IMG/VR virus record: IMGVR_UViG_3300023174_000033
Location: 1-64,000 of that record
Strand: one strand, 5' to 3'
Length of the DNA stretch: 64,000 nucleotides
Shown here: in pieces, positions 5,723 to 17,969 of the stretch
Numbering within the stretch: the stretch's first letter is position 1
Layout: each line of letters begins with the position of its first letter
Notes under the pieces: generated by a model
What the model saw: only the letters and a program-made list of their open reading frames with translations
Told to the model about the DNA's origin: nothing
Database searches by the model: none
Position numbers and translations under genes: made by a program

Positions 5723-6538
5723 ATGGATTCTGTAAAGGATTTTGTTTTAAATAAAATAGAAACTACTGATATAAATACTTATCCGTTCTATAATCTTTAT
5801 ATCCAAGATATTTTCCCAGATGATTTCTATAAAAGGTTAAAAGATAAAATGTTGTATTTTAAATACAACAAAAATTTACAAGATAGAAATTGGGATAACC
5901 CCAATTTTATCAATAAAAGGTTTCCACTCCATGATATTAATGATACGGAAATCAGCCAAGTCAGAGAAGTATTTGATGATGTGGACATCAAAAATGCCTT
6001 AATGAAGAAATTCTATTTCAATAGTTATCCAGATGAAATGGTTTTTAATCATGATATGCAATTTGTATTTACAGATGGAATGAGATTCCAAAGTATACAC
6101 ACAGATATACCAGCTCAATTTATATCTGTTAATTTCTATCTACCTGAGGATGAGCTTACAGAAGAGCAAGAGTTAGATAATGGAACTATTCTTTATGATA
6201 AAGAATTAAACCCTTGTAAAATAGTTAGATATAGGGGAAATAGTGTTTCTTTTTTTGCTCCTCATTTTTATAGTTATCATGGTTTTAATACAACTATAAA
6301 GAATAGAAATACTTTATTATTCTTTTATGCACAGAAAGACCTTATCAAAAGGTTTTATGATAATATTAAAAATCAAAATGGTGAACAGAATCCTGATAAG
6401 TTTAAAGATGTTATCCAATGGAAATTATCTAAATATAGATTAATTGAATATGGTTCAGATGATTTGGAATTTCTAACTAAATTAATTAAAGAAAAAGGAG
6501 ATTGTAAAGTAAATACATTAAATGGTAGGATAGAATAA
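5723..6538 (+). CDS. 2OG-Fe(II) oxygenase-like protein
   Basis: YPF…DIFPDDFY, HTD, GTILY, distal SYHG and R motifs. Confidence 0.7.
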   Translation: MDSVKDFVLNKIETTDINTYPFYNLYIQDIFPDDFYKRLKDKMLYFKYNKNLQDRNWDNPNFINKRFPLHDINDTEISQVREVFDDVDIKNALMKKFYFNSYPDEMVFNHDMQFVFTDGMRFQSIHTDIPAQFISVNFYLPEDELTEEQELDNGTILYDKELNPCKIVRYRGNSVSFFAPHFYSYHGFNTTIKNRNTLLFFYAQKDLIKRFYDNIKNQNGEQNPDKFKDVIQWKLSKYRLIEYGSDDLEFLTKLIKEKGDCKVNTLNGRIE

Positions 6539-6580
6539 AATATTTGGAATTCATCCAAACCTTTTTTATATTTGTATCTT

Positions 6581-6790
6581 ATGAAAGTAGTTTGTAATGC
6601 AAACACCACAATATTTAATTTTACTGAAGGTAAAATCTATGAAGTAATAACAGCACCTCACGATTATTTCTTTGCTAAATATATCATAGATGATAAGGGA
6701 TATAAAATTAAATATAGTGAATATACTGAATATATGTTCACGCCACTCGAATCAATAAGACAAGATAAGTTAAACCAATTAATAAAATGA
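6581..6790 (+). CDS. Small hypothetical protein (GKxYEV … IRQDKLNQL family)
   Basis: ATG at 6581 follows TATATTTG (6567-6574); paralogous to the next two ORFs. Confidence 0.65.
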   Translation: MKVVCNANTTIFNFTEGKIYEVITAPHDYFFAKYIIDDKGYKIKYSEYTEYMFTPLESIRQDKLNQLIK

Positions 6791-7008
6791 AAGTATCTCT
6801 TAAAAAAGTAGTATTTATGCCAGATACAGATGATATATATCATCCATTGGAATTAACCCCTAATAAAGTATATGATGTGATTAAAATCGTAAATGAAATC
6901 TTCTATCAGATTAAATCAGATGATGGTGAATTGAGAACCTATTATAACTCATTCTTTGAAGATATAAGTAAAATCAGACAAGAAAAAATAGACCTATTAC
7001 TAAAATGA
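6787..7008 (+). CDS. Small hypothetical protein (same family)
   Basis: LTPNKVYDV … IRQEKIDLLL; ATGA-type overlap with the previous gene. Confidence 0.65.
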   Translation: MKVSLKKVVFMPDTDDIYHPLELTPNKVYDVIKIVNEIFYQIKSDDGELRTYYNSFFEDISKIRQEKIDLLLK

Positions 7009-7781: not shown

Positions 7782-8279
7782 TTATAGTTTTTCTATTATA
7801 TTAACTAACTTAGCATAATCCTGACTCATCAACCATTTGAGTCCAAAGTGTAAAGGTTGTGGTAAATTATCCAATTCAGTCCAAGTGAATTCCTTAGTTT
7901 CCCAGTTTAATTTAGGTGTAAATTCTTCATCTACTATCGCTAAGAAGTTATAGTATCTAAACGAATCTTTTTGAAATATAGATAGTGGTACCATTTCTAC
8001 CTTACCACTATATCCAGCTTCCTCTGTTAATTCTCTTTTGGCTGAAATTTGTGGATCTTCATCACTATCAATCGCACCCCCCCAAACACCCCAAGTGTTC
8101 GGCTCTAATACATATGATGATCGTAATGGTAAAAGAAATCTTTTTGTTACCCTACATAGGATTATACAACCAGCGCCTTTTTTACCCCAAAATCCAGTAT
8201 CAGATAAAGCCTTACGGTGGTCTTCATCACTTTCCTTCAAAAATTTTTCAAATGATTCAAATTTGAATAAATGTTTCAT
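7782..8279 (-). CDS. NUDIX hydrolase with N-terminal MKHLFKFESF tag
   Basis: Nudix box GGAIDSDEDPQISAKRELTEEAG. Confidence 0.9.
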   Translation of the reverse strand: MKHLFKFESFEKFLKESDEDHRKALSDTGFWGKKGAGCIILCRVTKRFLLPLRSSYVLEPNTWGVWGGAIDSDEDPQISAKRELTEEAGYSGKVEMVPLSIFQKDSFRYYNFLAIVDEEFTPKLNWETKEFTWTELDNLPQPLHFGLKWLMSQDYAKLVNIIEKL

Positions 8280-8944
8280 ATTATATTATTTTCTAAACAC
8301 CATTCATCCAAGACTTTTAAAGCCTCCTCCCTTGGTAAATCTCTTACCACTCTACCATTCTCCTTATAGAACTGTGCCCTCATTTGATTATCTATCCCAC
8401 GCTCAGTGAAATCTTCATCCTTTAGGACTGGTTCAGACTTATATGATCTAGGAATTCTAGGAACTTTAGTAAATAATCCCTCACTAGCTTTATCTTTTAA
8501 TAATTGCTCCAAACCTTTAAATGGGTTTTTATCACTTTCCTCACATATAAAATGTCCCATAGCTTTTGTATAATCAGTAGCCCTTGTATTGGGTGCAAAT
8601 ATAGAAACCACAAAACCAATACCACCTTGATCGAATGGTTTGATTAATATAATGTGATCAGTCTCCTCACATCGACAAATCAAAACCTTTAGAACATCTT
8701 TATCACTATATTCATATTGACGATCAAATTCAGCACTAAATGAAACATCACCTATAATAGATTTACACAACTCTTCTATCTTATTAAAAAATCCGTTTGA
8801 TTTCTTATCATCATCCCAAACGAGATACTTATCCCCCATTAACCAACTCTCCCTCCAAGTATTATATTGTTCCGCACTTATCTCTTCATAATAAGTTGAA
8901 AAGTAATCAGTATCAAAATCTTCAAATAATTTTAAGTGTTTCAT
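8276..8944 (-). CDS. Hypothetical protein, MKHLKLFE family
   Basis: N-terminal tag; C-terminal ~50 aa shared with 17280-17969. Confidence 0.7.
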   Translation of the reverse strand: MKHLKLFEDFDTDYFSTYYEEISAEQYNTWRESWLMGDKYLVWDDDKKSNGFFNKIEELCKSIIGDVSFSAEFDRQYEYSDKDVLKVLICRCEETDHIILIKPFDQGGIGFVVSIFAPNTRATDYTKAMGHFICEESDKNPFKGLEQLLKDKASEGLFTKVPRIPRSYKSEPVLKDEDFTERGIDNQMRAQFYKENGRVVRDLPREEALKVLDEWCLENNII

Positions 8945-8996
8945 ATTTTATATATTTATTTTTGGATTACAATTATATTATTGATATTTTTGTCTT

Positions 8997-9221
8997 ATGA
9001 CATACCAAGAAGCTTACGACCTAGCACTTAAATCAAAATGGATTGCAACACCCTGCTTTGTAGGGGAATCCTGTTGGTGTAATATAATCACACCAGAAGT
9101 CCCAATCTTTTATGGCGAAGAAGATAACGAAGAAGTCCAAATAGTTTCATCAGGCGCCATTAATAAACAAATAGCAGAGCATATAGTAAAAGTCCATAAC
9201 CAATCCCTTGAATCAAAATGA
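8997..9221 (+). CDS. Hypothetical protein (CFxGExCWC motif)
   Basis: ORF after TATTTTTG box at 8985-8992. Confidence 0.7.
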   Translation: MTYQEAYDLALKSKWIATPCFVGESCWCNIITPEVPIFYGEEDNEEVQIVSSGAINKQIAEHIVKVHNQSLESK

Positions 9222-9457
9222 TGAATGAATATTATAAACCCCTAATAGTTTTCCTCATAGGTGGTATCATAGGAATTTCTATTCTCATTTTAAAAACACC
9301 CAGTAAAAAATACCCAGTGACAGTTCAATGTTATTGGGAAACAAAAGGTTATCAATCATATCCCACTTTTGAGTGTGATTCTATTAAAGGTGATACTTGT
9401 TATAAAGATGGTAATGTGATTATAACAAAGAATATTATTAACGTTAGTTTTAATTAA
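9218..9457 (+). CDS. Hypothetical membrane-anchored protein
   Basis: N-terminal hydrophobic helix. Confidence 0.6.
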   Translation: MMNEYYKPLIVFLIGGIIGISILILKTPSKKYPVTVQCYWETKGYQSYPTFECDSIKGDTCYKDGNVIITKNIINVSFN

Positions 9458-9494
9458 ATTTGGTTTACAATTATTTTATCCTTACCTTTGTCTT

Positions 9495-9662
9495 ATGAAT
9501 AACACAAAAGTTGAAAGAGCAATCTACCTACAAAAAAAGGCGAACGACCAAATAGATACTTATGGTGAAGCATCCCATGATGTTGTAGATGAACTAATGG
9601 AAATTGTAGATTCCTTAAATGAAGGGGAACAATCACTTATGTTAGAACTTTATTACAAATAA
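9495..9662 (+). CDS. 55-aa hypothetical protein; its TAA stop forms the first TAAC core of the array
   Basis: MNNTKVERAIYLQKKANDQIDTYG…LYYK*, after TACCTTTG at 9483-9490; below the ORF-track cutoff. Confidence 0.7.
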   Translation: MNNTKVERAIYLQKKANDQIDTYGEASHDVVDELMEIVDSLNEGEQSLMLELYYK

Positions 9663-9748
9663 CGGTTGGGTGTATATGTAGGTTTTTAAATAAATACTCT
9701 AATATATACTATTGAACTAAATGAAAAACTTACATATACACCTTGTTA
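9660..9748. repeat. attC-like site 1 (class A)
   Basis: TAAC-GGTTG-GGTGTATATGTAGGTTTT … AAAACTTACATATACACC-TT-GTTA. Confidence 0.85.
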
Positions 9749-9806
9749 TGTGTTAGTAAAAAAAATAAAAACTTATTATGAAACAAAAATTATACAAATT
9801 AAAAAT

Positions 9807-10019
9807 ATGAAAATTAAAGACTTAAAAGATTGGTTGGATACACTAACAAAAGAACACGATGAATGCGAAATTGTGTTTAGAAAAATTGTTGGTAAAGATA
9901 ATAAGGATTATATGATTGCGAAGGATAATAGCATTGATGCTTGTGGAATAGACACAGACAATAATGAGGTTTATTTTTGTGATGAAACGACACACAACAT
10001 TATTGAGAAAAACTCATAA
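9807..10019 (+). CDS. Cassette 1 ORF, hypothetical
   Basis: ATG at 9807 (MKIKDLKDWL…KNS) after the conserved cassette leader. Confidence 0.7.
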   Translation: MKIKDLKDWLDTLTKEHDECEIVFRKIVGKDNKDYMIAKDNSIDACGIDTDNNEVYFCDETTHNIIEKNS

Positions 10020-10037
10020 TTTTTGTTTTATTACTTA

Positions 10038-10085
10038 TAACGTCCGATGATAAACAATCGTTTTAATGTTGTTTATCATTTGTTA
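10038..10085. repeat. attC-like site 2 (class B, 48 bp)
   Basis: TAAC-GTCCG-ATGATAAACAA-TCGTTTTAATG-TTGTTTATCAT-TT-GTTA. Confidence 0.85.
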
Positions 10086-10119
10086 GGTTTAGTATCAAAA
10101 ATTTTATACAAATTAAAAT

Positions 10120-10443
10120 ATGAAAGCAAGAATTAACGAGAATGAAACAAAAGAACTGAATCCAACAGAGATTGGAGAAAGGTTCATCAATGTAATGAAT
10201 AAATTACAAGAATTAGGTGTTTTTTATGGTGAAAACTATGGTGGTAAATACGAAGAAAAATATCCACATAGTTGTTATATGTTTAATATTAGATTGGATA
10301 GACATCGTTCTGGTTTTGAAAGTTTAATTGAAGATGGGTGTGGTGATAACACAGAAGAAGTTGAAGTTGCAAGAGAAGATACATCAGTTGAAGAATTATT
10401 GGTTCTTTTGGAAAAGACTTTCGATAAACTAAAAAACTCATAA
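10120..10443 (+). CDS. Cassette 2 ORF, hypothetical
   Basis: ORF between complementary cassette ends; ends in KNS*. Confidence 0.7.
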   Translation: MKARINENETKELNPTEIGERFINVMNKLQELGVFYGENYGGKYEEKYPHSCYMFNIRLDRHRSGFESLIEDGCGDNTEEVEVAREDTSVEELLVLLEKTFDKLKNS

Positions 10444-10537
10444 AATTTTTGATATTGAATATAACTAGCGGCTACACGCAGGTTTATTGTGTATATACAA
10501 CAAATTAAAAAACTCAAAACAATAATTTAATTGAACC

Positions 10538-10650
10538 TAACGGTTGGGTGTATGAGAAGGTTTTTTATTTGGAAATCTCGAAATTTATACCTACCTTTGT
10601 ATGAGTAGTGTGGCTTTGCACATACTTTCAACTTACAGATAAACTTTATA
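10538..10650. repeat. Degenerate attC-like site (class A left arm, decayed right arm) with an internal promoter
   Basis: TAACGGTTGGGTGTATGAGAAGGTTT is identical to the left arm at 12504. Right arm AACTTACAGATAAACTTTATAAAC lacks GTT. TTTG (10568) and TACCTTTG (10592) lie inside. Confidence 0.65.
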
Positions 10651-10663
10651 AACAGTTTTTACT

Positions 10664-10879
10664 ATGGAAGAATTTACACAACATGATTGGAATCACATGC
10701 ACGATTGTATATTACATGCAACTTGGAATACCACGAAGAAGAAATCTACAAGAGAAGAACTTGTGGAAATTTTCAATAAACTACCAGAAGACTTAAAAGA
10801 AGATGCTTACGAATGGGGTATGTCAGATACGTTGTGGAGAGATAAGTTTATTGAATGGTATGAGGAAAATTGTTTATAA
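10664..10879 (+). CDS. Cassette 3 ORF, hypothetical
   Basis: Stop codon overlaps the TAAC core at 10877. Confidence 0.7.
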   Translation: MEEFTQHDWNHMHDCILHATWNTTKKKSTREELVEIFNKLPEDLKEDAYEWGMSDTLWRDKFIEWYEENCL

Positions 10880-10955
10880 CGGTCGCAAATATGAGAAGTA
10901 AATCTTTTCATTAAAAATTAGGCAAAGTAAGATTTATTTCTTATATTTGTTGTTA
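10877..10955. repeat. attC-like site (class C, 79 bp)
   Basis: TAAC-GGTCG-CAAATATGAGAAGTAAATCTT … AAGATTTATTTCTTATATTTG-TT-GTTA. Confidence 0.85.
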
Positions 10956-10985
10956 TAAGTAGTAAAAACTAAAAAAATTATACAA

Positions 10986-11201
10986 ATGGAACAAAAACTC
11001 GAATTAAATTACAAGGAACAAATTGATTTTCTAACTTCAAAAAGAGATATAGAGTTGGAAAAATTGGATAATATGTTAAAAAGTAATTCAGATAGATTAA
11101 AAATAGAAAATCAATTTGATACACTCATGAAAGAACAAAATCAACTATCACTTACAATAGGTGCTAATAGAGTTTTTGTTAATAGTAGATATGGTAAATA
11201 A
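10986..11201 (+). CDS. Cassette 4 ORF a, coiled-coil-like hypothetical
   Basis: ORF inside the cassette. Confidence 0.65.
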   Translation: MEQKLELNYKEQIDFLTSKRDIELEKLDNMLKSNSDRLKIENQFDTLMKEQNQLSLTIGANRVFVNSRYGK

Positions 11202-11218
11202 TTTTAAAAATTAAACAA

Positions 11219-11440
11219 ATGAAAAGAACTAAATTAACAGATTTTATTTTGAAAAACTTACGATGGACTAGTATATTTTTGTGGAATCAAATATATTTTA
11301 ACAGATTAAGTAAAGCGTTAGAAGAATTTAAAAACAATTCAGATGTGGAAACTATTTCACACAAAAATAATGATGTAATTAAAAGTTTTTCAAAAGAAAA
11401 TTTAGGTGATAGTACTATATATAAAGTTGAGGTAGTTTAA
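11219..11440 (+). CDS. Cassette 4 ORF b, hypothetical
   Basis: Second ORF in the same cassette. Confidence 0.6.
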   Translation: MKRTKLTDFILKNLRWTSIFLWNQIYFNRLSKALEEFKNNSDVETISHKNNDVIKSFSKENLGDSTIYKVEVV

Positions 11441-11459
11441 TTTTAGTTTTTATTACTTA

Positions 11460-11538
11460 TAACTGTTGCAAATATGAGAAGTAAATCTTTTCATTAAAAA
11501 ATAAACAAAATAAGATTTATTTCTTATATTTGTTGTTA
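11460..11538. repeat. attC-like site (class C, 79 bp)
   Basis: TAAC-TGTTG-CAAATATGAGAAGTAAATCTT … AAGATTTATTTCTTATATTTG-TT-GTTA; near-identical to 10877-10955. Confidence 0.85.
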
Positions 11539-11552
11539 TATTAGTTAAATTA

Positions 11553-11801
11553 TTGTTTTACAGATTAAAAAAGAAAAAAGTGAAAGAACAAATTATTGAA
11601 ATTTTAGGAAAAAACCACACCACTCCAATACAATTTGATGAATTTAATGGTTTTTATGGACTATATACATATAAAAATGGTGTATATGTGTTTAAGGAAG
11701 GTGAAGATATTGATTATGATGATATTAATGATAGTGATAAAAATAAAATATTAAAAGTGGTTTTGTCTAAAAAATGGAAATTAAATAAATCTCTACAATA
11801 A
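11553..11801 (+). CDS. Cassette 5 ORF, hypothetical
   Basis: ORF filling the cassette; start codon uncertain (TTG or a later GTG). Confidence 0.6.
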   Translation: MFYRLKKKKVKEQIIEILGKNHTTPIQFDEFNGFYGLYTYKNGVYVFKEGEDIDYDDINDSDKNKILKVVLSKKWKLNKSLQ

Positions 11802-11820
11802 ACAATAATTTAATTGAATA

Positions 11821-11868
11821 TAACGTCTGATGATAAACAATCGTTTTAATGTTGTTTATCATTTGTTA
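11821..11868. repeat. attC-like site (class B, 48 bp)
   Basis: TAAC-GTCTG-ATGATAAACAA-TCGTTTTAATG-TTGTTTATCAT-TT-GTTA; 1 nt different from 10038-10085. Confidence 0.85.
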
Positions 11869-11914
11869 TAAGTATGTAAAACAAAAATTATACAAATTAA
11901 AAAAAAATAAAATT

Positions 11915-12148
11915 ATGAGTTGGAAATTAAACACAGAAGATGAAAATCCATTATGGAGACAATATATGGATGAACTTGAAAAAATGAATCCAGAGGAATC
12001 AAGAAAATGGGAGGTAGTAAGAGAATTACCAGTTGAATTACCATTTAAGACAACAACGACATCCAATTATTCAGAAGATGAATTTTTGGAAAAATTGAAA
12101 ACTGATGAGGACTTTAATAAGAGATGGGGTAAATTAAAAAACTCATAA
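11915..12148 (+). CDS. Cassette 6 ORF, hypothetical
   Basis: ATG at 11915 (MSWKLNTEDE…KLKNS) after the conserved leader. Confidence 0.7.
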   Translation: MSWKLNTEDENPLWRQYMDELEKMNPEESRKWEVVRELPVELPFKTTTTSNYSEDEFLEKLKTDEDFNKRWGKLKNS

Positions 12149-12166
12149 TTTTTGTTTTATTACTTA

Positions 12167-12214
12167 TAACGATTGCAAATATATTGTCGTTTTAATGCAA
12201 TATATTTGTTGTTA
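12167..12214. repeat. attC-like site (class C-type stem with class B loop, 48 bp)
   Basis: TAAC-GATTG-CAAATATATTG-TCGTTTTAATG-CAATATATTTG-TT-GTTA. Confidence 0.85.
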
Positions 12215-12252
12215 TAGGTAGTTTATTAATTTTCTAAAACGGATTAAAAGAT

Positions 12253-12495
12253 ATGACACACGAATACATAAATGAATTATTAGAAAGACAGGGTGAAAAT
12301 CCTGTTTTGTTAGATAGATGTGTATTAAACATCACTGATGGTAGAAGTATAATTTACACACTTTGTGGTGATACTGATTATGAACAACGAGAACTTGAAA
12401 TATGCTATGCTGATAAACATAGTGATGTTATTTGGAAAGGTATCGTTAAAACAAAACAGGAATTGGAAAAGGTAGTTTTAGAAAATTTAAAATAA
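12253..12495 (+). CDS. Cassette 7 ORF, hypothetical
   Basis: ORF between complementary ends. Confidence 0.7.
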   Translation: MTHEYINELLERQGENPVLLDRCVLNITDGRSIIYTLCGDTDYEQRELEICYADKHSDVIWKGIVKTKQELEKVVLENLK

Positions 12496-12503
12496 ATTAC
12501 ATA

Positions 12504-12591
12504 TAACGGTTGGGTGTATGAGAAGGTTTGCTTTGATGAACTTTCAAATTATCACCAATGCTGATAGCAAACTTTCTTATACACCTTGTTA
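12504..12591. repeat. attC-like site (class A, 88 bp)
   Basis: TAAC-GGTTG-GGTGTATGAGAAGGTTTGCT … AGCAAACTTTCTTATACACC-TT-GTTA. Confidence 0.85.
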
Positions 12592-12702
12592 TAACCAGTA
12601 CGGTAAAATTGCACAAATGTTTGATTGAAATACTGAACAAAAACTTTTAAAAATGTGCGGTGGGAATTTTAAAATTGAATATTTATATATAAAGTAAAAA
12701 CT

Positions 12703-13200
12703 ATGAGTGAAGATATACGCAAAATGATTGATAAAGTTAAGAAATTTAAACAATTTATTAGCGAAAGTAATACTACAAATTATATCAATTGGAGTGATTT
12801 ACCAATCCAAGTAAAAAATGACATAACTGAAAATTTGAGAGATAATATACGATATATTAAAGAAGAATATTGGAATAGTGAAGCGTTGAGAGATTCTATT
12901 GACGATTCTATTAATAAACCAATTTTTAAAATAGAATATAAAAATGTTGATGTTTTGTATAACGAACTTATACAAATTGGTTGGGGTATTAGTGAAGACA
13001 ATGTTAAAAGATTAATTTCTGCTCTAAAAAATGGTGCTGAACTTGACCCAATTATACTTGAAAACGGTAAATTTTTTGATGGTGGTCATAGATTGACTGC
13101 ATACAAAAAAATGAAAAAAGAATTAATACCTACAATTGATATTGGATTTTTGATGAATTTCGATTGGGAAAAATGGGACAACGGACAGGCTGATTTTTAA
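12703..13200 (+). CDS. Cassette 8 ORF, ParB/Srx-like domain protein
   Basis: LDPIILENGKFFDGGHRLTAY motif. Confidence 0.7.
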   Translation: MSEDIRKMIDKVKKFKQFISESNTTNYINWSDLPIQVKNDITENLRDNIRYIKEEYWNSEALRDSIDDSINKPIFKIEYKNVDVLYNELIQIGWGISEDNVKRLISALKNGAELDPIILENGKFFDGGHRLTAYKKMKKELIPTIDIGFLMNFDWEKWDNGQADF

Positions 13201-13247
13201 AAGTTTTTGAAAAAAAATGCTAAATAGAACGTATAATGTAATATTGG

Positions 13248-13280
13248 TTATAACTAACATATATCTACAATAACCTGTTT
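13248..13280. other. Candidate attI-like primary site at the integrase-proximal end of the array
   Basis: The last cassette ends in TAAC (13251-13254), followed by non-palindromic TAACATATATCTACAATAAC about 50 bp before the integrase start. Confidence 0.45.
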
Positions 13281-13305
13281 TTCCACCTTTTAAACAAACT
13301 GGCAA

Positions 13306-13814
13306 GTGAAAAAAACCAACTATTACGAAATTTGTAAAACAAAACTGCAATACCTAAACTACTCACCCAAAACCCAATCTACCTATTTACACTATGTAGA
13401 GCAATTCCTAAACGCAACCAAAATACCACCTACAAGGCTTACCTCACAAGATTTTCAATCCTATCTTGATAACTTTAATTTCACCTCAACATCCCAACAA
13501 AATCAAGTAATAAATTCAATCCGATTTCTATATAAGTTTGGACTGAATAAGAAATATGATAAGGTTTCTTTCAAAAGACCTAAATCAGAAAAAAAACTAC
13601 CTAAAGTAGTTGATTCCGATTTTATACTCAATAAACTTGACCAAATAGGTAATATCAAACACAAAACTATACTAACACTAACCTTTTCTGTGGGTCTTAG
13701 AGTATCTGAAATAACTAACCTTAAAATTGAAGATATTGACTCTAAACGAATGATAATCCATATCAAAAATGCGAAAGGTAGAAAAGATAGAATAGTCCCA
13801 CTTTCACAAAAAGT
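13306..13814 (+). pseudogene. Tyrosine recombinase (integron-integrase/XerD-like), N-terminal part
   Basis: NYSPKTQSTY…F, QNQVINSIRFLY, KKLPKV, GLRVSE..NLKIEDID and KGRKDRIVPL motifs; breaks off at the GIY-YIG gene. Confidence 0.9.
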
Positions 13815-14600
13815 CTATTTCAAATTATAATCTTCTAAATATCTAAAATTAGTATTATTTTTTATTTGTCCTAAAAGTTTAGCTTTTAAGGTTCTTACCT
13901 TTATTCCCATTGAATCGGCTGCTTCCTTTTTACTCGGAAAAATTTCTCCAGTTTCAATGTTTATAATTGGTCTTTTATTATGAGCTACTTTTCCTTTATT
14001 CGATTCACTTATTTTTTTCTTTGTTTCACCTGAATGTTTTTTACCCGACATTGGTTTATGATGAGCATGATTTTTACTAATTTTTTTTCTTATATCATCT
14101 GTAAGTTTTACACCCTTTCTATTTGAATTGCCCTTAGTGAAATTATTACCTAATAACCAACCATTTTCTAAATATGATTCCAATTGATTTACACATACTA
14201 GAATACACTCATTATCTTTATAAATCCATTTTTTACCAAATTGTGGATTTTTTTCATTACTGAAATCAGCTCTATTCATTTTCATTAATAACTTAGTATA
14301 ATCAGACATTATATAACTATCACCACCCTCCCTCAAATTTAATCCAATGTCACTATTAAAGCTATTAAACTCTGCTATGTATTTTTTCTCTAAAAAATTT
14401 AATTCATCTCTTTCACATTCTACAAGAATAGAAAATTCATGATTTTCCCAACCATATTTTTTTATAGAATTATATAAAAAAGTTTGTTCTATGCATTTTT
14501 CCGATTTATATGATCTAATTCTTCTCTTTATATCAATTGATTGTCCTATATAAATTCTACCAGATGGAGAAACTATTTTATATATACCACATATTTTCAT
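13815..14600 (-). CDS. GIY-YIG homing endonuclease with NUMOD3-like repeats
   Basis: GIYKIVSPSGRIYIGQS…R…Y, LE..YI..FNS…GLNL..GG, GKKHSGETKKKIS and C-terminal IINIETGEIFPS..EAA motifs. Confidence 0.92.
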   Translation of the reverse strand: MKICGIYKIVSPSGRIYIGQSIDIKRRIRSYKSEKCIEQTFLYNSIKKYGWENHEFSILVECERDELNFLEKKYIAEFNSFNSDIGLNLREGGDSYIMSDYTKLLMKMNRADFSNEKNPQFGKKWIYKDNECILVCVNQLESYLENGWLLGNNFTKGNSNRKGVKLTDDIRKKISKNHAHHKPMSGKKHSGETKKKISESNKGKVAHNKRPIINIETGEIFPSKKEAADSMGIKVRTLKAKLLGQIKNNTNFRYLEDYNLK

Positions 14601-14633: not shown

Positions 14634-14735
14634 ATGATAATCCAAAAAATAGCAGGTCACTCAAATGTTAAAACAACTGAAATATATACACACGTCTCAA
14701 ATCAATTACTAAGTAAAGTAAATCTACCCATATGA
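14634..14735 (+). pseudogene. C-terminal remnant of the tyrosine recombinase (catalytic Tyr box)
   Basis: Translates as MIIQKIAGHSNVKTTEIYTHVSNQLLSKVNLPI*, matching IQxLxGHxxxxTTxIYTH. Confidence 0.9.
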
Positions 14736-15479: not shown

Positions 15480-15561
15480 GTTTTATCGGGGTAAATAAAC
15501 AATTGTCTGAGCATAAAGTAAAATTACATAACCAATCCCTTGAATCAAAATAACTAATTAT

Positions 15562-16518
15562 ATGAAAATATTCACCGGTTCAAATAACAATCAATTAAGT
15601 CAAAAAATATCAAATAGCTTACAATCTATTTCAAATGGGTATTATACTGACTCATTCGATAGTCTTAAAATAGAGAAGTTTTCAGATGGTGAAATACTTC
15701 CACTCTTTACCGAATCTGTTAGAAATCAAGATGTTTATTTTATACAAAGTTTAGTAAGCAGTGATGCAATAATGGAAACCTTACTCGTATCAGATGCCGC
15801 TAAAAGAGCAGGTTGCTTATCTTTTAATCTAATATCACCTTATATGGGATACTCAAGACAAGATAAAACAGATCACCTAAGATCTTCTATTGGCTCTAAA
15901 GTTATCGCTGATATATTTGAAAAAATAGGAGTTAATAATTTATTCACTATCGACCTACACGCATCCTCTATTCAAGGATTCTATAACATACCAGTTATAC
16001 ATTTAAATGGTAATAAAATATTTATTGATTACTTAAAAGATCTAAACATTGATGATATTTGCATCGTAGCACCAGATCAAGGTGCGGTTAAAAGAGCCTC
16101 GGATTACTGTAAAGCTTTCCCAGATTCTACATTCGCAATGATTAATAAAAAAAGAACTAAACCAAATGAAGTTCATTCAATGGAGCTAGTTGGTGATGTT
16201 AAAGATAAAAACGTTGTTATCGTTGATGATATAGCAGATACCCTTGGAACTTTGAAAAAAGCATCAGAACTTGTTAAATCACACGGGGCCAAATCAGTTA
16301 GAGCAATTTGTACTCACGGAATCCTTTCCTCAAGTGCTATCAAAAATCTTGAAGAATCCCCTTTAATAGAATTATTGGTTTCAGATAGTATAGAATCTGT
16401 TATTGATAAAGCAACTTGGAGTAATAAGTTAAGAGTCGTAACTTGCGCTGATATCCTATCCAAAACAGTTATAGCAGTCCACCATAAGAAAAGTGTACAC
16501 GAAATAAACATAATCTAA
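15562..16518 (+). CDS. prs: Ribose-phosphate pyrophosphokinase
   Basis: FSDGEI, ESVR, YSRQDK, DLHA..IQGFY, PDQG, VDDIADT.GT and THG motifs. Confidence 0.95.
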   Translation: MKIFTGSNNNQLSQKISNSLQSISNGYYTDSFDSLKIEKFSDGEILPLFTESVRNQDVYFIQSLVSSDAIMETLLVSDAAKRAGCLSFNLISPYMGYSRQDKTDHLRSSIGSKVIADIFEKIGVNNLFTIDLHASSIQGFYNIPVIHLNGNKIFIDYLKDLNIDDICIVAPDQGAVKRASDYCKAFPDSTFAMINKKRTKPNEVHSMELVGDVKDKNVVIVDDIADTLGTLKKASELVKSHGAKSVRAICTHGILSSSAIKNLEESPLIELLVSDSIESVIDKATWSNKLRVVTCADILSKTVIAVHHKKSVHEINII

Positions 16519-17279: not shown

Positions 17280-17969
17280 TTATTTATTATTCATATCCCA
17301 TTTATCCAAAACCTTTAAAGCTTCTTCTCTGGGTAAATCCCCTACCTCCTTACCATGTTCCTTGTAAAACTTAGCCTTCATTTGATTGTCCATTCCACGC
17401 TCGATAAAATGTTCATCCTTTAAGATTGGTTCAGACTTATAAGCTTTTGGTTCCTTTTTAATCTTCTTATGTAAACAAGGCGATTCAGTCCAAACGTGTA
17501 ATGTAACACCTTCTTCCTTAGACATCTGAATCAATTCTTCATAAGACAAGGATCCAACCATACCACTATCAATTAACTGCTGTTGATACTCAACTATTGG
17601 TAGATAATCCCAATTCTTAAAGAAAAGTTGCCCAAGTCCACCACTGCCTATTTGTTTTGTAAACCCAAATCTAGCACCTTCTTGTGGTATTATCTCAAAT
17701 GCATTTCCAAACTTATCATAATTATTATCAGCCGGTCTGAAAAACATATGTACAGATTTAGTAGGGTCTTGTATTCCAAACTTAGTTGACCAGTTAGTCA
17801 TGAATTTTCTATAATTTTCATCATACCACATATCCCCTAAATGAACCTTTCTTTGACTAGGGTCATCTATGTATTCATCCTTATCTGCCCTTGAACCTCT
17901 TATCAAGGTTTTGTTGAATACATCTGGGAAATTAGATTGGAAGTTTTCGAATAGTTTAATATGTTTCAT
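17280..17969 (-). CDS. Hypothetical protein, MKHIKLFE family
   Basis: N-terminal tag; C-terminal module shared with 8276-8944. Confidence 0.7.
   Translation of the reverse strand: MKHIKLFENFQSNFPDVFNKTLIRGSRADKDEYIDDPSQRKVHLGDMWYDENYRKFMTNWSTKFGIQDPTKSVHMFFRPADNNYDKFGNAFEIIPQEGARFGFTKQIGSGGLGQLFFKNWDYLPIVEYQQQLIDSGMVGSLSYEELIQMSKEEGVTLHVWTESPCLHKKIKKEPKAYKSEPILKDEHFIERGMDNQMKAKFYKEHGKEVGDLPREEALKVLDKWDMNNK

Follow-up and report, generated by a model that had tools for sequence, protein, structure and literature searches.

Integrons comprise an IntI integrase, an attI site next to the integrase gene at which cassettes are inserted, and gene cassettes carrying attC sites, and they include clusters of attC sites without an integrase (CALINs). 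The integrase is a tyrosine recombinase with an additional domain (the I2 helix) near its C-terminal catalytic region; attC sites are imperfect palindromes with R''/R' boxes (AAC and GTT), L boxes, an unpaired central spacer, extra-helical bases, and a variable loop; and cassette ORFs point away from attI and are expressed from a Pc promoter on the integrase side. In the sedentary chromosomal integrons, for example in the repeats of Vibrio cholerae, one nearly identical recombination site is attached to many unrelated ORFs, the classical hint that cassettes are made locally by joining a standard site to diverse genes; the genesis of cassettes is discussed in PMC8352920. Clusters of attC sites have also been described in virulent phages, including a marine Polaribacter phage (Qi et al. 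2023, PMC9892861), and in T4-type phages the PeSL regulatory cassettes, a sigma-70 early promoter plus a stem-loop terminator in each intergenic motif, flank novel small ORFs (PMC2839356, PMC4122927). Here we examine an integron-like gene-cassette array in the first 64,000 nucleotides (hereafter the window) of a 464,605-bp lake-phage genome (IMG/VR record IMGVR_UViG_3300023174_000033), in which a first-pass annotation made from the sequence alone had noted that two cassettes share an identical leader and an identical trailer around seemingly unrelated proteins, and had proposed that new cargo is swapped into a pre-existing frame that provides translation signals.

Anatomy of the array and its recombinase gene

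Bases 9.6-13.3 kb of the window hold eight small-gene cassettes separated by attC-like hairpins (AAC...GTT), followed by an attI-like site and a XerA-like tyrosine recombinase gene that is here destroyed by a GIY-YIG endonuclease gene. The features are as follows, with L-numbers denoting loci retrieved for comparison and X3 denoting a metagenome run.

9459-9490 (+), Bacteroidota-type promoter-like motif (TTTG, about 20 nt, TAnnTTTG) found by a pattern scan ahead of the gene at the far end of the array, with a second copy at 10568-10599; assigning these as promoters rests on the published Bacteroidetes consensus and is an inference
9495-9662 (+), 55-aa ORF at the end of the array farthest from the recombinase; its stop overlaps the AAC of the first hairpin, and it has a trailer-like 3' end but no leader
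9661-9747 (+), attC-like hairpin 0 (type B), from AAC at 9661-9663 to GTT at 9745-9747
9781-9805 (+), leader of cassette 1, comprising the outer-stem arm, a conserved TATAC, and an A-rich run before the ATG; an extra 26-35 nt relic at 9748-9780 separates it from the GTT, and run X3 joins 9763 to 11822
9807-10019 (+), cassette 1 ORF (70 aa, no assigned function), whose last two codons and stop lie in the trailer; homologues occur in L113 and L279
10008-10041 (+), trailer of cassette 1, with the invariant AAACTCATAA, then the outer-stem arm, ending in TTATAAC
10039-10084 (+), attC-like hairpin 1 (type A)
10082-10465 (+), cassette 2, with a covarying leader (10082-10119), ORF 10120-10443 (107 aa), and trailer 10432-10465; the whole cassette recurs at 94% identity in L123 beside different hairpins
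10494-10541 (+), ORF-less remnant in which a leader-end motif (TATAC..) is joined directly to a trailer (AAACTCA.. to AAC), followed by a degenerate type-B hairpin to about 10612; the same trailer type closes a real ORF in L137
10664-10954 (+), cassette 3 ORF (10664-10879, stop inside TTATAAC) and hairpin 3 (type C, AAC 10878 to GTT 10952)
10952-11537 (+), cassette 4, with leader 10952-10985, two ORFs (10986-11201 and 11219-11440), trailer to 11463, and hairpin 4 (type C)
11535-11867 (+), cassette 5, with leader, ORF ending at 11801, trailer 11797-11824, and hairpin 5 (type A)
11865-12213 (+), cassette 6, with leader 11865-11914 (the block shared with cassette 1 is 11879-11903), ORF 11915-12148 (77 aa), trailer 12137-12170, and hairpin 6 (type D); recurs in L116 at 90% identity
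12211-12590 (+), cassette 7, with leader, ORF 12253-12495, and hairpin 7 (type B)
12588-13254 (+), cassette 8, the last one, with ORF 12703-13200 (165 aa), ending in GGTTATAAC at 13246-13254
13255-13305 (+), attI-like site, a conserved sequence joined to the AAC of whichever cassette is last, just upstream of the recombinase start codon
13306-13830 (+), N-terminal fragment (174 aa) of a XerA-like tyrosine recombinase, a pseudogene
13815-14600 (-), GIY-YIG/NUMOD homing-endonuclease gene, which replaces about 65 codons of the recombinase, including the HxLRH motif
14634-14735 (+), C-terminal fragment (33 aa, with the catalytic Tyr motif) of the same recombinase

Seven regular hairpins in 3 kb share the AAC...GTT boxes, a 7-9-bp R-box duplex, a 5-versus-2-nt asymmetric spacer, an 11-20-bp inner stem, and a loop, and all have the same asymmetry of 4 unpaired bases after the AAC and 1 before the GTT, although AAC and GTT were required by the detector by construction. 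The boxes are 40-120 nt apart, so that no compact Xer/dif-type (pdif-like) site, a 28-nt double-stranded site with two 11-nt arms around a 6-8-nt spacer, is evident by eye. No Rfam family was found at the locus, and a search for a group I intron at the endonuclease insertion returned none. The same hairpin types, leaders, and trailers occurred in 48 of the 129 loci retrieved up to that point, in arrays of up to 18 hairpins per 8 kb, and cassettes 1, 2, and 6 recur whole in other contigs beside different hairpins and different neighbours; comparative evidence alone indicates that the cassettes are independently mobile units, supported by the complementarity of each cassette's own arms and by alternative joints at the hairpins in metagenome contigs.

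A homologous recombinase (55-73% identity) lies just downstream of such arrays, on the ORF strand, in 8 other loci, whereas the copy in this genome is broken and no second copy exists, so nothing can move here without help in trans. The intact orthologues of L011 (268 aa, at 6189-6995 of that locus) and L065 (276 aa) scored 151 and 145 bits on the integron-integrase profile TIGR02249 (cutoff 265), in two pieces; against VchIntIA (2a3v) they aligned at 21-180 and 210-267, leaving about 48 IntI residues unmatched, and they aligned end to end with archaeal XerA (4a8e, E = 1e-37). The recombinase therefore lacks the insertion with which integron integrases recognise folded attC sites, and it is not certain that it acts on hairpins at all. 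In all 9 loci compared, the variable trailer of the last cassette is joined, at ..TAAC, to one conserved sequence about 50 nt before the recombinase start, from which the function of an attI site is inferred. In run X3 a contig joins 10873 to 13248 inside the shared 7-nt TTATAAC, such that cassette 3 abuts the attI-like site and cassettes 4-8 are absent. Word depth is 480-790 over hairpin A and the leader, against about 55 over unique cassette DNA. Polaribacter phage Freya was examined as a cultured model; its integrase is 37% identical and small ORFs lie upstream, but no comparable hairpin array was seen.

The leader, the trailer, and the genes between them

The observation of shared cassette ends was confirmed. 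The 25-nt leader at 9781-9805 equals 11879-11903 (25/25) and the 35-nt trailer at 10008-10042 equals 12137-12171 (35/35); each has exactly two copies in the window at up to 3 mismatches, with 0 expected in 100 dinucleotide-preserving shuffles. A BLAST search of 9400-13300 against the whole genome found these repeats only inside 9.6-12.6 kb, and matches near 58.3-58.4 kb of the window lie inside a coding gene and are chance. Cassette 2 carries a covarying variant of both parts, and the three ORFs of cassettes 1, 2, and 6 end in K-N-S-stop, read from the shared AAAAACTCATAA, with the stop codon and the last two residues coming from the trailer. In the likely source sample, independent Logan contigs each span a whole leader-ORF-trailer unit (9724-10037, 10064-10539, and 11866-12166) with no differences, so the units are not assembly chimeras; these contigs break at every hairpin, however, which leaves the order of the cassettes less certain.

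The three proteins showed no similarity by BLASTP (no alignment at E <= 100) or by profile-profile comparison (hhalign probabilities of 0.5% or less), the shared KLKNS tail being the only segment that hhalign aligned, and the predicted structures of the cassette 1 and cassette 6 proteins were too weak to compare (pLDDT 50 and 67).

Each cassette's leader is the reverse complement of its own trailer, not of the neighbouring one. In 156 unique cassettes from the window and the retrieved loci, the mean complementarity score was 11.8 for the own leader, against 6.1 for the physically adjacent leader and 6.0 for a random one, and own beat adjacent in 120 cases and lost in 28 (Wilcoxon p = 1.8e-18). 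Within the window, the own and adjacent scores were 22 and 7.5 for cassette 4, 20.5 and 6 for cassette 5, 22.5 and 8 for cassette 6, and 21.5 and 6 for cassette 7. The background of the hairpin detector is about one hit per 15 kb per strand, so some of the 156 cassettes are false, which should only dilute the effect. A per-position profile also showed the pairing, leader and trailer covary from cassette to cassette, and with DNA energy parameters the circular junction folds to between -15 and -35 kcal/mol, against -11 to -22 as arranged in the array. The trailer is 100% conserved (34/34, 34/34, 22/22) where ORF bodies are 87-96%, including 34/34 for the trailer of cassette 1, where the ORF body is 87%. 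An excess of G.T pairs on the sense strand could simply reflect GC skew and is not used as evidence for which strand folds. We also attempted to decide from homologous units whether the inner hairpin travels with the gene upstream or downstream of it, but almost no cassette recurred among 213 units, and the few informative pairs came from unrelated phages caught by chance 17-mer matches and were dropped.

About 10 unrelated ORF families end in NS-stop within the cassette-1/6 frame and about 11 within the cassette-2 variant, each with the matching leader; the metagenome pattern search matched only the cassette-2 trailer type, so the cassette-1/6 type was catalogued from viral contigs instead. 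Homologues of cassettes 2 and 6 outside cassettes lack the leader, the trailer, and the hairpins, and homology with them starts about 15 nt before the ATG and stops just before ACTCATAA. The cassette-6 homologues also lack the tail, a check that had been proposed beforehand, whereas the native C-terminus of the cassette-2 family outside cassettes (..LKNQ-stop) is already nearly the trailer sequence. A search for ORF-less frames found no copy of the cassette-1/6 type in 2.9 million viral contigs, and a pattern search over all retrieved loci yielded one candidate, the remnant at 10494-10541 of the window.

Interpretation and competing explanations

The interpretation offered by the first-pass annotation was partly supported: the locus is an integron-type cassette array in which the leader and trailer form a conserved frame shared by unrelated ORFs, but a primary role of that frame as a provider of translation signals was not supported, and cargo being swapped into a pre-existing frame is one possible history for which nothing here shows a direction or a mechanism. 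We favour a reading, at a probability of roughly 0.7, in which the main constraint on the frame is the stem of the recombination site. In this view, the palindrome of the site continues 15-25 bp outside the AAC/GTT boxes, and when a circular cassette is opened by crossover at the box and inserted, the two outer arms would end up at opposite ends of the gene, one becoming the leader after the GTT and the other the trailer before the AAC. This would explain why each leader is complementary to its own trailer, why the pair covaries, and why the trailer is more conserved than the coding sequence, with cassettes 1 and 6 carrying the same outer-arm type and cassette 2 a sister type. The bases just outside the stem (AAACTC and TATAC) are conserved but do not pair, and are not explained by the pairing model; on the trailer side, AAACTCATAA puts Asn-Ser-stop on any ORF that reads into it, and on the leader side TATAC plus an A-rich run sits directly before the ATG, and many unrelated phage genes would in this view have been recruited between these two fixed points. 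The anatomy, the own-versus-neighbour complementarity, the recurrence of whole cassettes in other arrays, the link with the recombinase and the attI-like site, the population variant with its breakpoint in TTATAAC, the reuse of the frame by unrelated ORFs, and the non-cassette homologues without the frame are shown by the analysis, whereas we infer that this recombinase catalyses the exchange, that the folded strand or a cruciform is the substrate, that the outer stem helps folding of the excised circle in AT-rich DNA, and that the A-rich leader serves Shine-Dalgarno-independent translation in a Bacteroidota host.

The strongest competitor, although unlikely, is that an ORF-less empty cassette exists as a standing vector, with translation signals in the leader, a loading point, and a stop codon in the trailer, into which a dedicated process loads new genes at fixed junctions. 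About 20 unrelated ORFs do sit between the same two points, all in the frame that reads Asn-Ser-stop; homology between cassette and non-cassette copies stops at those points; the remnant at 10494-10541 joins a leader end directly to a trailer; joints in the source sample, whatever may lie between them, link leader to trailer (11895 to 12139, 10118 to 10439, 11585 to 10510); and chimeric ORFs keep the leader and the first 24-45 codons of cassette 2 or 6 and then switch to unrelated sequence. Against this stand the near absence of ORF-less frames in the searches above, the best-resolved chimera (L223), which is a fusion of two cassettes with mismatched leader and trailer and hence a deletion rather than a loading event, and the ..LKNQ-stop ending of the cassette-2 family outside cassettes, such that part of the supposed chassis, including the tail, may simply have come from the 3' end of one ordinary gene. 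No candidate loading enzyme or loading site was identified.

Less likely still, the hairpin with its two arms could itself be a small mobile palindromic element (MITE- or REP-like) that inserts between passive genes, the leader and trailer being its terminal inverted repeats. The same ORF unit is found next to different inner hairpins (cassettes 1 and 2), hairpin sequences are far more abundant than any one cassette, and a trailer remnant without a hairpin lies next to clpP in Tara contigs. Such an element would, however, leave the two arms that flank one hairpin complementary to each other, whereas these match no better than random pairs (6.1 versus 6.0) and the arms flanking one gene do match (11.8), and the recombinase, the attI-like junction, and the breakpoint in TTATAAC point to site-specific exchange of gene units. 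Shuffling of PeSL-like promoter-plus-terminator motifs by homologous recombination, with no site-specific recombinase, is also improbable: the setting is a phage hyperplastic region of small ORFans with conserved intergenic stem-loops, and the identical 25-35-nt blocks could support homologous exchange, but sigma-70 promoter-like sites are not enriched (26 found, 30.1 expected), none of the hairpins scores as an intrinsic terminator and neither of the two terminator-like hits lies at a hairpin, and homologous exchange explains neither the pairing of a leader with its own trailer nor the conserved recombinase and attI-like junction. That the three ORFs are diverged copies of one gene can be all but dismissed, given the absence of sequence or profile similarity outside the tail, their different lengths, the conserved core of the cassette-6 family ending ..FNKRWG and followed by variable tails, and the separate non-cassette homologues of cassettes 2 and 6.

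A more far-reaching possibility, which we offer only tentatively, is that these phage arrays are a separate, functional integron-like system running on a Xer-type recombinase that never acquired the IntI insertion, with cassettes built on a standardised hairpin frame (two pairing arms, a built-in stop codon, and a start region) into which ordinary phage genes are recruited at two fixed junctions by a specific process; the cassette and non-cassette copies of the same gene would then make the long-unsolved step of cassette genesis directly readable and testable. In this family the recombination site reaches into both ends of the gene, so the junctions between site and cargo are visible to the base, and the occurrence of the same genes outside cassettes in related phages gives matched before-and-after pairs. 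The coupling of attC-like hairpins to a recombinase lacking the domain thought to have enabled single-strand recombination bears on how integron integrases evolved from Xer proteins (PMC4792948, PMC7790495), and the arrays show that large lytic-type phages of lakes and oceans keep sizeable sets of exchangeable small genes, probably for dealing with hosts.

Comparison with described systems

Like integrons and CALINs, the locus is an array of mostly single small ORFs, each bounded by an attC-like imperfect palindrome with AAC and GTT triplets (which the hairpin detector required), an unpaired asymmetric spacer, and a variable loop; stop codons overlap the site, a tyrosine recombinase gene and a conserved attI-like junction lie at one end, cassettes recur in other arrays in other orders, and ORF-less and fused cassettes occur. 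It differs in that the recombinase is a 268-276-aa XerA-like protein without the IntI-specific insertion, all ten array ORFs lie on the + strand, which folds better, and point toward the recombinase gene, the opposite of classical cassettes, with promoter-like motifs at the far end and inside the array, the palindrome extends 15-25 bp outside the R boxes, the extra unpaired bases sit beside the AAC on the ORF-sense strand, and the carrier is a phage.

The attC clusters of virulent phages (PMC9892861) likewise place attC-type sites and small cassettes in lytic phage genomes, but those clusters have as few as two predicted sites and no integrase and were tested with the bacterial IntI1, whereas the present arrays reach 8-18 sites, have their own conserved recombinase and attI-like site, and recur in dozens of viral contigs. 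As in the homogeneous attC repeats of sedentary chromosomal integrons, one standard site accompanies many unrelated ORFs, but here the shared block also covers the translation-start region and the last codons of the ORF and is split into two arms that pair across the gene. The PeSL cassettes resemble the locus in that conserved intergenic stem-loop motifs flank novel small ORFs in variable regions of large phages and allow modular shuffling, but they are exchanged by homologous recombination, whereas here there is no promoter or terminator signal and there is a dedicated recombinase with an attI-like site. Finally, in the reverse integrons of Treponema the integrase and the cassettes are on the same strand, as they are here, but there the integrase is a true IntI that lies upstream of the array, whereas here a Xer-like gene lies downstream of it.

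Repeated ends, genomic setting and anatomy of the array

The 25-nt leader and the 35-nt trailer were each found exactly twice when up to 3 mismatches were allowed, whereas 0 matches are expected in dinucleotide-preserving shuffles, and a self-comparison against the whole genome placed these and the neighbouring repeats only between 9.6 and 12.6 kb. Cassette 2 has a related leader and trailer, and three ORFs end in Lys-Asn-Ser-stop read from the same 12 bases. The observation made in the first-pass annotation, that identical ends surround ORFs that look unrelated, was borne out. In the run that most likely gave rise to the assembly, separate contigs each cover a complete leader-ORF-trailer unit without a difference (9724-10037, 10064-10539, and 11866-12166); these contigs end at every hairpin, so the units are real but their order is less secure.

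The window is the first 64 kb of a single 464,605-bp contig with about 30% G+C. The only hit among deposited phages was a 462-kb "uncultured phage" (LR756500.1), and the runs that hold the sequence are lake and freshwater metagenomes. A Bacteroidota host is inferred from the absence of Shine-Dalgarno-like leaders, from TTTG...TAnnTTTG motifs preceding some genes, and from the nearest recombinases of cultured phages, which are from Cellulophaga and Polaribacter phages at 40% and 37% identity, respectively. Motifs fitting the Bacteroidota promoter consensus (TTTG, about 20 nt, TAnnTTTG) were located at 8961-8992, 9459-9490, and 10568-10599, the last of these inside a degenerate hairpin ahead of cassette 3, and the whole window has 14 on the + strand and 8 on the - strand. 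A freshwater metatranscriptome library also holds contigs that match several hairpins, leaders, and parts of cassettes within 9400-13400, although this does not show transcription, as DNA carry-over is not excluded. The features of the array and the adjoining genes are as follows.

9781-9805 and 11879-11903: the two copies of the 25-nt leader
10008-10042 and 12137-12171: the two copies of the 35-nt trailer
9661-12590: seven regular hairpins of four sequence types (A-D)
10494-10541: an ORF-less remnant
About 10542-10612: an eighth, degenerate hairpin
13255-13305: a 51-nt sequence after the last unit
13306-13830 and 14634-14735: two fragments of a tyrosine recombinase gene, on the strand of the ORFs
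Between these fragments, on the other strand: a GIY-YIG/NUMOD homing-endonuclease gene

Each regular hairpin runs from an AAC to a GTT and has a 7-9-bp box duplex, 4 unpaired bases after the AAC and 1 before the GTT, an inner stem, and a loop. Types A and D share the boxes, the spacer ends, and the loop but have entirely different, fully compensated inner stems. Between the hairpins lie eight units with ten small + strand ORFs. An open frame also starts at an ATG inside the type-A hairpin and runs through the leader (MLFIICYKYVKQKLY..) in frame with several unrelated cassette ORFs (window 11849-12148, and the retrieved loci L016, L112, and L282-L284); gene callers sometimes report this longer product (for example, P0001), which may be a coincidence of the A/T-rich leader. 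The recombinase fragments match positions 6-173 and 282-312 of the integron-integrase model, and about 65 central codons, including the HxLRH motif, are missing and replaced by the endonuclease gene. No group I intron signature was found, nor was a second copy of the recombinase in the genome, and the array is probably frozen in this genome.

The module is bracketed by a 65-nt direct repeat (85% identical) at 9162-9226 and 15494-15558, which encloses the array, the recombinase, the endonuclease gene, and two more ORFs; the first copy is the 3' end of ORF 8997-9221, and the repeat could mark the module as an inserted island about 6.3 kb long. On either side of the module, a 167-nt repeat at 77% identity (8286-8452 and 17284-17450) links the 3' end regions of two minus-strand genes (8276-8944 and 17280-17969), which are probably paralogues. 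The very start of the contig (1-248) holds a tandem repeat with a 36-nt period, with at least five copies in register that are 66-91% identical to the reference copy, and this may be a genome-end or assembly feature. Elsewhere in the window, nucleotide-metabolism genes were identified, namely an OMP decarboxylase-like gene (1190-1954), a NUDIX hydrolase (7782-8279), and a ribose-phosphate pyrophosphokinase (15562-16518).

Pairing of cassette ends and evidence for recombination

Read from the boxes outward, the leader of a cassette is the reverse complement of the trailer of the same cassette, with a small conserved internal mismatch about 11 positions out, and although the sequences differ between cassettes 2, 4, 5, 6, and 7, the pairing is kept. 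This was tested without using the flanks for detection: hairpins were found from AAC, GTT, and the inner fold only, in the window and in all 129 loci retrieved up to that point, and successive hairpins defined 156 unique cassettes.

Mean anchored complementarity score of a trailer by the leader with which it was paired
Its own leader: 11.8
The leader physically next to it: 6.1
A random leader: 6.0

Own leaders beat adjacent leaders in 120 cases and lost in 28 (p = 1.8e-18). Position by position, own pairs are 57-79% complementary at positions 4-10 and 61-64% at positions 12-15, whereas neighbours score 27-53% at positions 5-10 (position 4 is high in all sets) and 27-50% at positions 12-15; position 11 is non-complementary in all sets. 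With DNA energy parameters, the circular junction (trailer, hairpin, own leader) is far more stable than the junction as it stands in the array, with values of -26.7 against -12.7 kcal/mol for cassette 4, -21.8 against -11.5 for cassette 5, -25.6 against -13.4 for cassette 6, and -34.9 against -21.8 for cassette 7. The leader and trailer are therefore the outer arms of one long palindrome that is cut open at the box and separated by the gene, which is what an excision-insertion cycle at the box predicts and the opposite of what a hairpin element inserting between genes would leave.

The same hairpin types, leaders, and trailers are carried by 48 of the 129 loci (about 40 distinct contigs), as well as by LR756500.1, in arrays that reach 18 hairpins in 8 kb. 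Cassettes 1, 2, and 6 occur whole in other contigs (87-98%, 94%, and 90% identity, respectively) beside other hairpins and other neighbours. Homologues of the recombinase (55-73% identity) lie immediately downstream of such arrays, on the ORF strand, in eight other loci, and the intact proteins are 268 and 276 aa. In all nine loci, the trailer of whichever cassette is last is joined, at ..TAAC, to one conserved sequence about 50 nt before the recombinase start, which behaves as an attI-like site with the crossover at or beside the AAC. In a different freshwater sample, a contig joins 10873 to 13248 inside the shared TTATAAC, such that cassette 3 abuts the attI-like site and cassettes 4-8 are absent. 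In the source sample, hairpin A plus the leader has a word depth of 480-790, against about 55 for unique cassette DNA, and many contigs connect the modules in other ways, always at the hairpins. Seen in reverse complement, the layout is the classical one of integrase gene, attI, a G|TT-type crossover, and cassettes, with the difference that the ORFs are antisense to the classical direction.

The recombinase is not an integron integrase in the defined sense. It aligns end to end with archaeal XerA (4a8e, E = 1e-37) and scores below the cutoffs of both the XerA model (184 bits vs 220) and the integron-integrase model (151 vs 265). Against VchIntIA it aligns in two blocks that skip about 48 residues of the IntI protein, including the insertion that defines the family (for the role of the insertion, see PMC8138268, PMC4792948, and PMC7790495). 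In a search of one genome per prokaryotic species, the nearest relatives were at most 48% identical. One of these, 46% identical to the phage protein and located on a contig from a Bacillota MAG (L143, 1-6750; 42% G+C), has eight AAC...GTT hairpins on the same strand directly upstream in the same layout, which may therefore exist well outside this phage group.

The reused frame and its cargo genes

The conserved block extends beyond the pairing arms. On the trailer side, AAACTCATAA is invariant in every copy of the two main arm types, while a variant, AAACTCAAAA, occurs with a third arm type, where the ORF reads on to a later stop. On the leader side, TATAC follows the arm, and the ATG comes 2-20 nt later. 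After near-identical ORFs and leader-encoded false N-termini were removed, about 10 unrelated ORF families were found to use the cassette-1/6 frame. About 11 use the cassette-2 frame, each with the matching leader and each ending in Asn-Ser-stop, and no family is shared between the two sets. The trailer is 100% conserved in pairs whose ORF bodies are 87-96% identical.

By sequence and profile comparison, the cargo genes are not related. The possibility that the three ORFs are diverged homologues, which had been named beforehand as the outcome that would overturn the first-pass reading, found no support: BLASTP returned nothing, and profiles built from 33, 8, and 7 family members gave hhalign probabilities of 0.5% or less, the only aligned stretch being the KLKNS tail. 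Structures were also predicted, but with too much uncertainty to add anything.

The cassette-6 family has 69 database members, whose core ends ..FNKRWG, after which the tails vary (KLKNS, TTKQ, KIKI, TPFKSDND, QQNNN, or none). Three members in 140-225-kb phage contigs sit in tightly packed operons with no hairpins, leader, or trailer, and DNA homology with the cassette copy starts about 15 nt before the ATG and ends just before ACTCATAA. Two non-cassette members of the cassette-2 family are likewise embedded in operons, and their native ends, ..LKNQ-stop and ..LKKDLNV-stop, show that the A-rich Lys-Asn part is native to that family and that only the last codon or so is imposed by the frame. 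In Tara Oceans contigs (at least 24; L220, 1501-1760), a cassette-6 homologue directly follows clpP and carries a slightly decayed trailer ending in TTATAAC, with no hairpin after it and no leader; in LR756500.1 the array also ends next to clpP (locus L001, about 9377). Chimeric ORFs keep the leader and the first 24-45 codons of cassette 2 or 6 and then change, and the best-resolved one has mismatched arms and is a fusion of two cassettes.

The first-pass interpretation, that new cargo is swapped into a pre-existing frame that provides translation signals, was partly supported: the data establish that a frame is reused and where its borders are, but they do not show how genes enter it. Excision and insertion at the box and the role of the attI-like site are inferred from sequence comparison, as is the host. 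The candidate routes of entry are illegitimate or microhomology-mediated joining in the A-runs at both borders, successive cassette fusions, and a dedicated loading step into an ORF-less cassette. An ORF-less remnant exists at 10494-10541, and leader-to-trailer joints of undetermined content exist in the source sample, but no empty cassette-1/6 frame was found in viral contigs. The outer stem may act by promoting hairpin or cruciform formation in very AT-rich DNA.

Comparison with known systems

The system works like an integron but departs from integrons in two defining features, the IntI insertion and the ORF/Pc orientation, and we therefore regard it as a variant of the integron rather than a member. 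As far as our literature searches reached, the pairing of each cassette's two ends, the extension of the site into the coding sequence, the dedicated Xer-like recombinase with its attI-like site, the inverted gene orientation, and the matched cassette and non-cassette copies of the same genes are new. Other ideas raised here have precedents: clusters of attC sites occur in virulent phages (PMC9892861), one attC type can serve many unrelated ORFs, as in sedentary chromosomal integrons (PMC8352920), and conserved intergenic motifs shuffle ORFans in T4-type phages (PMC2839356, PMC4122927).
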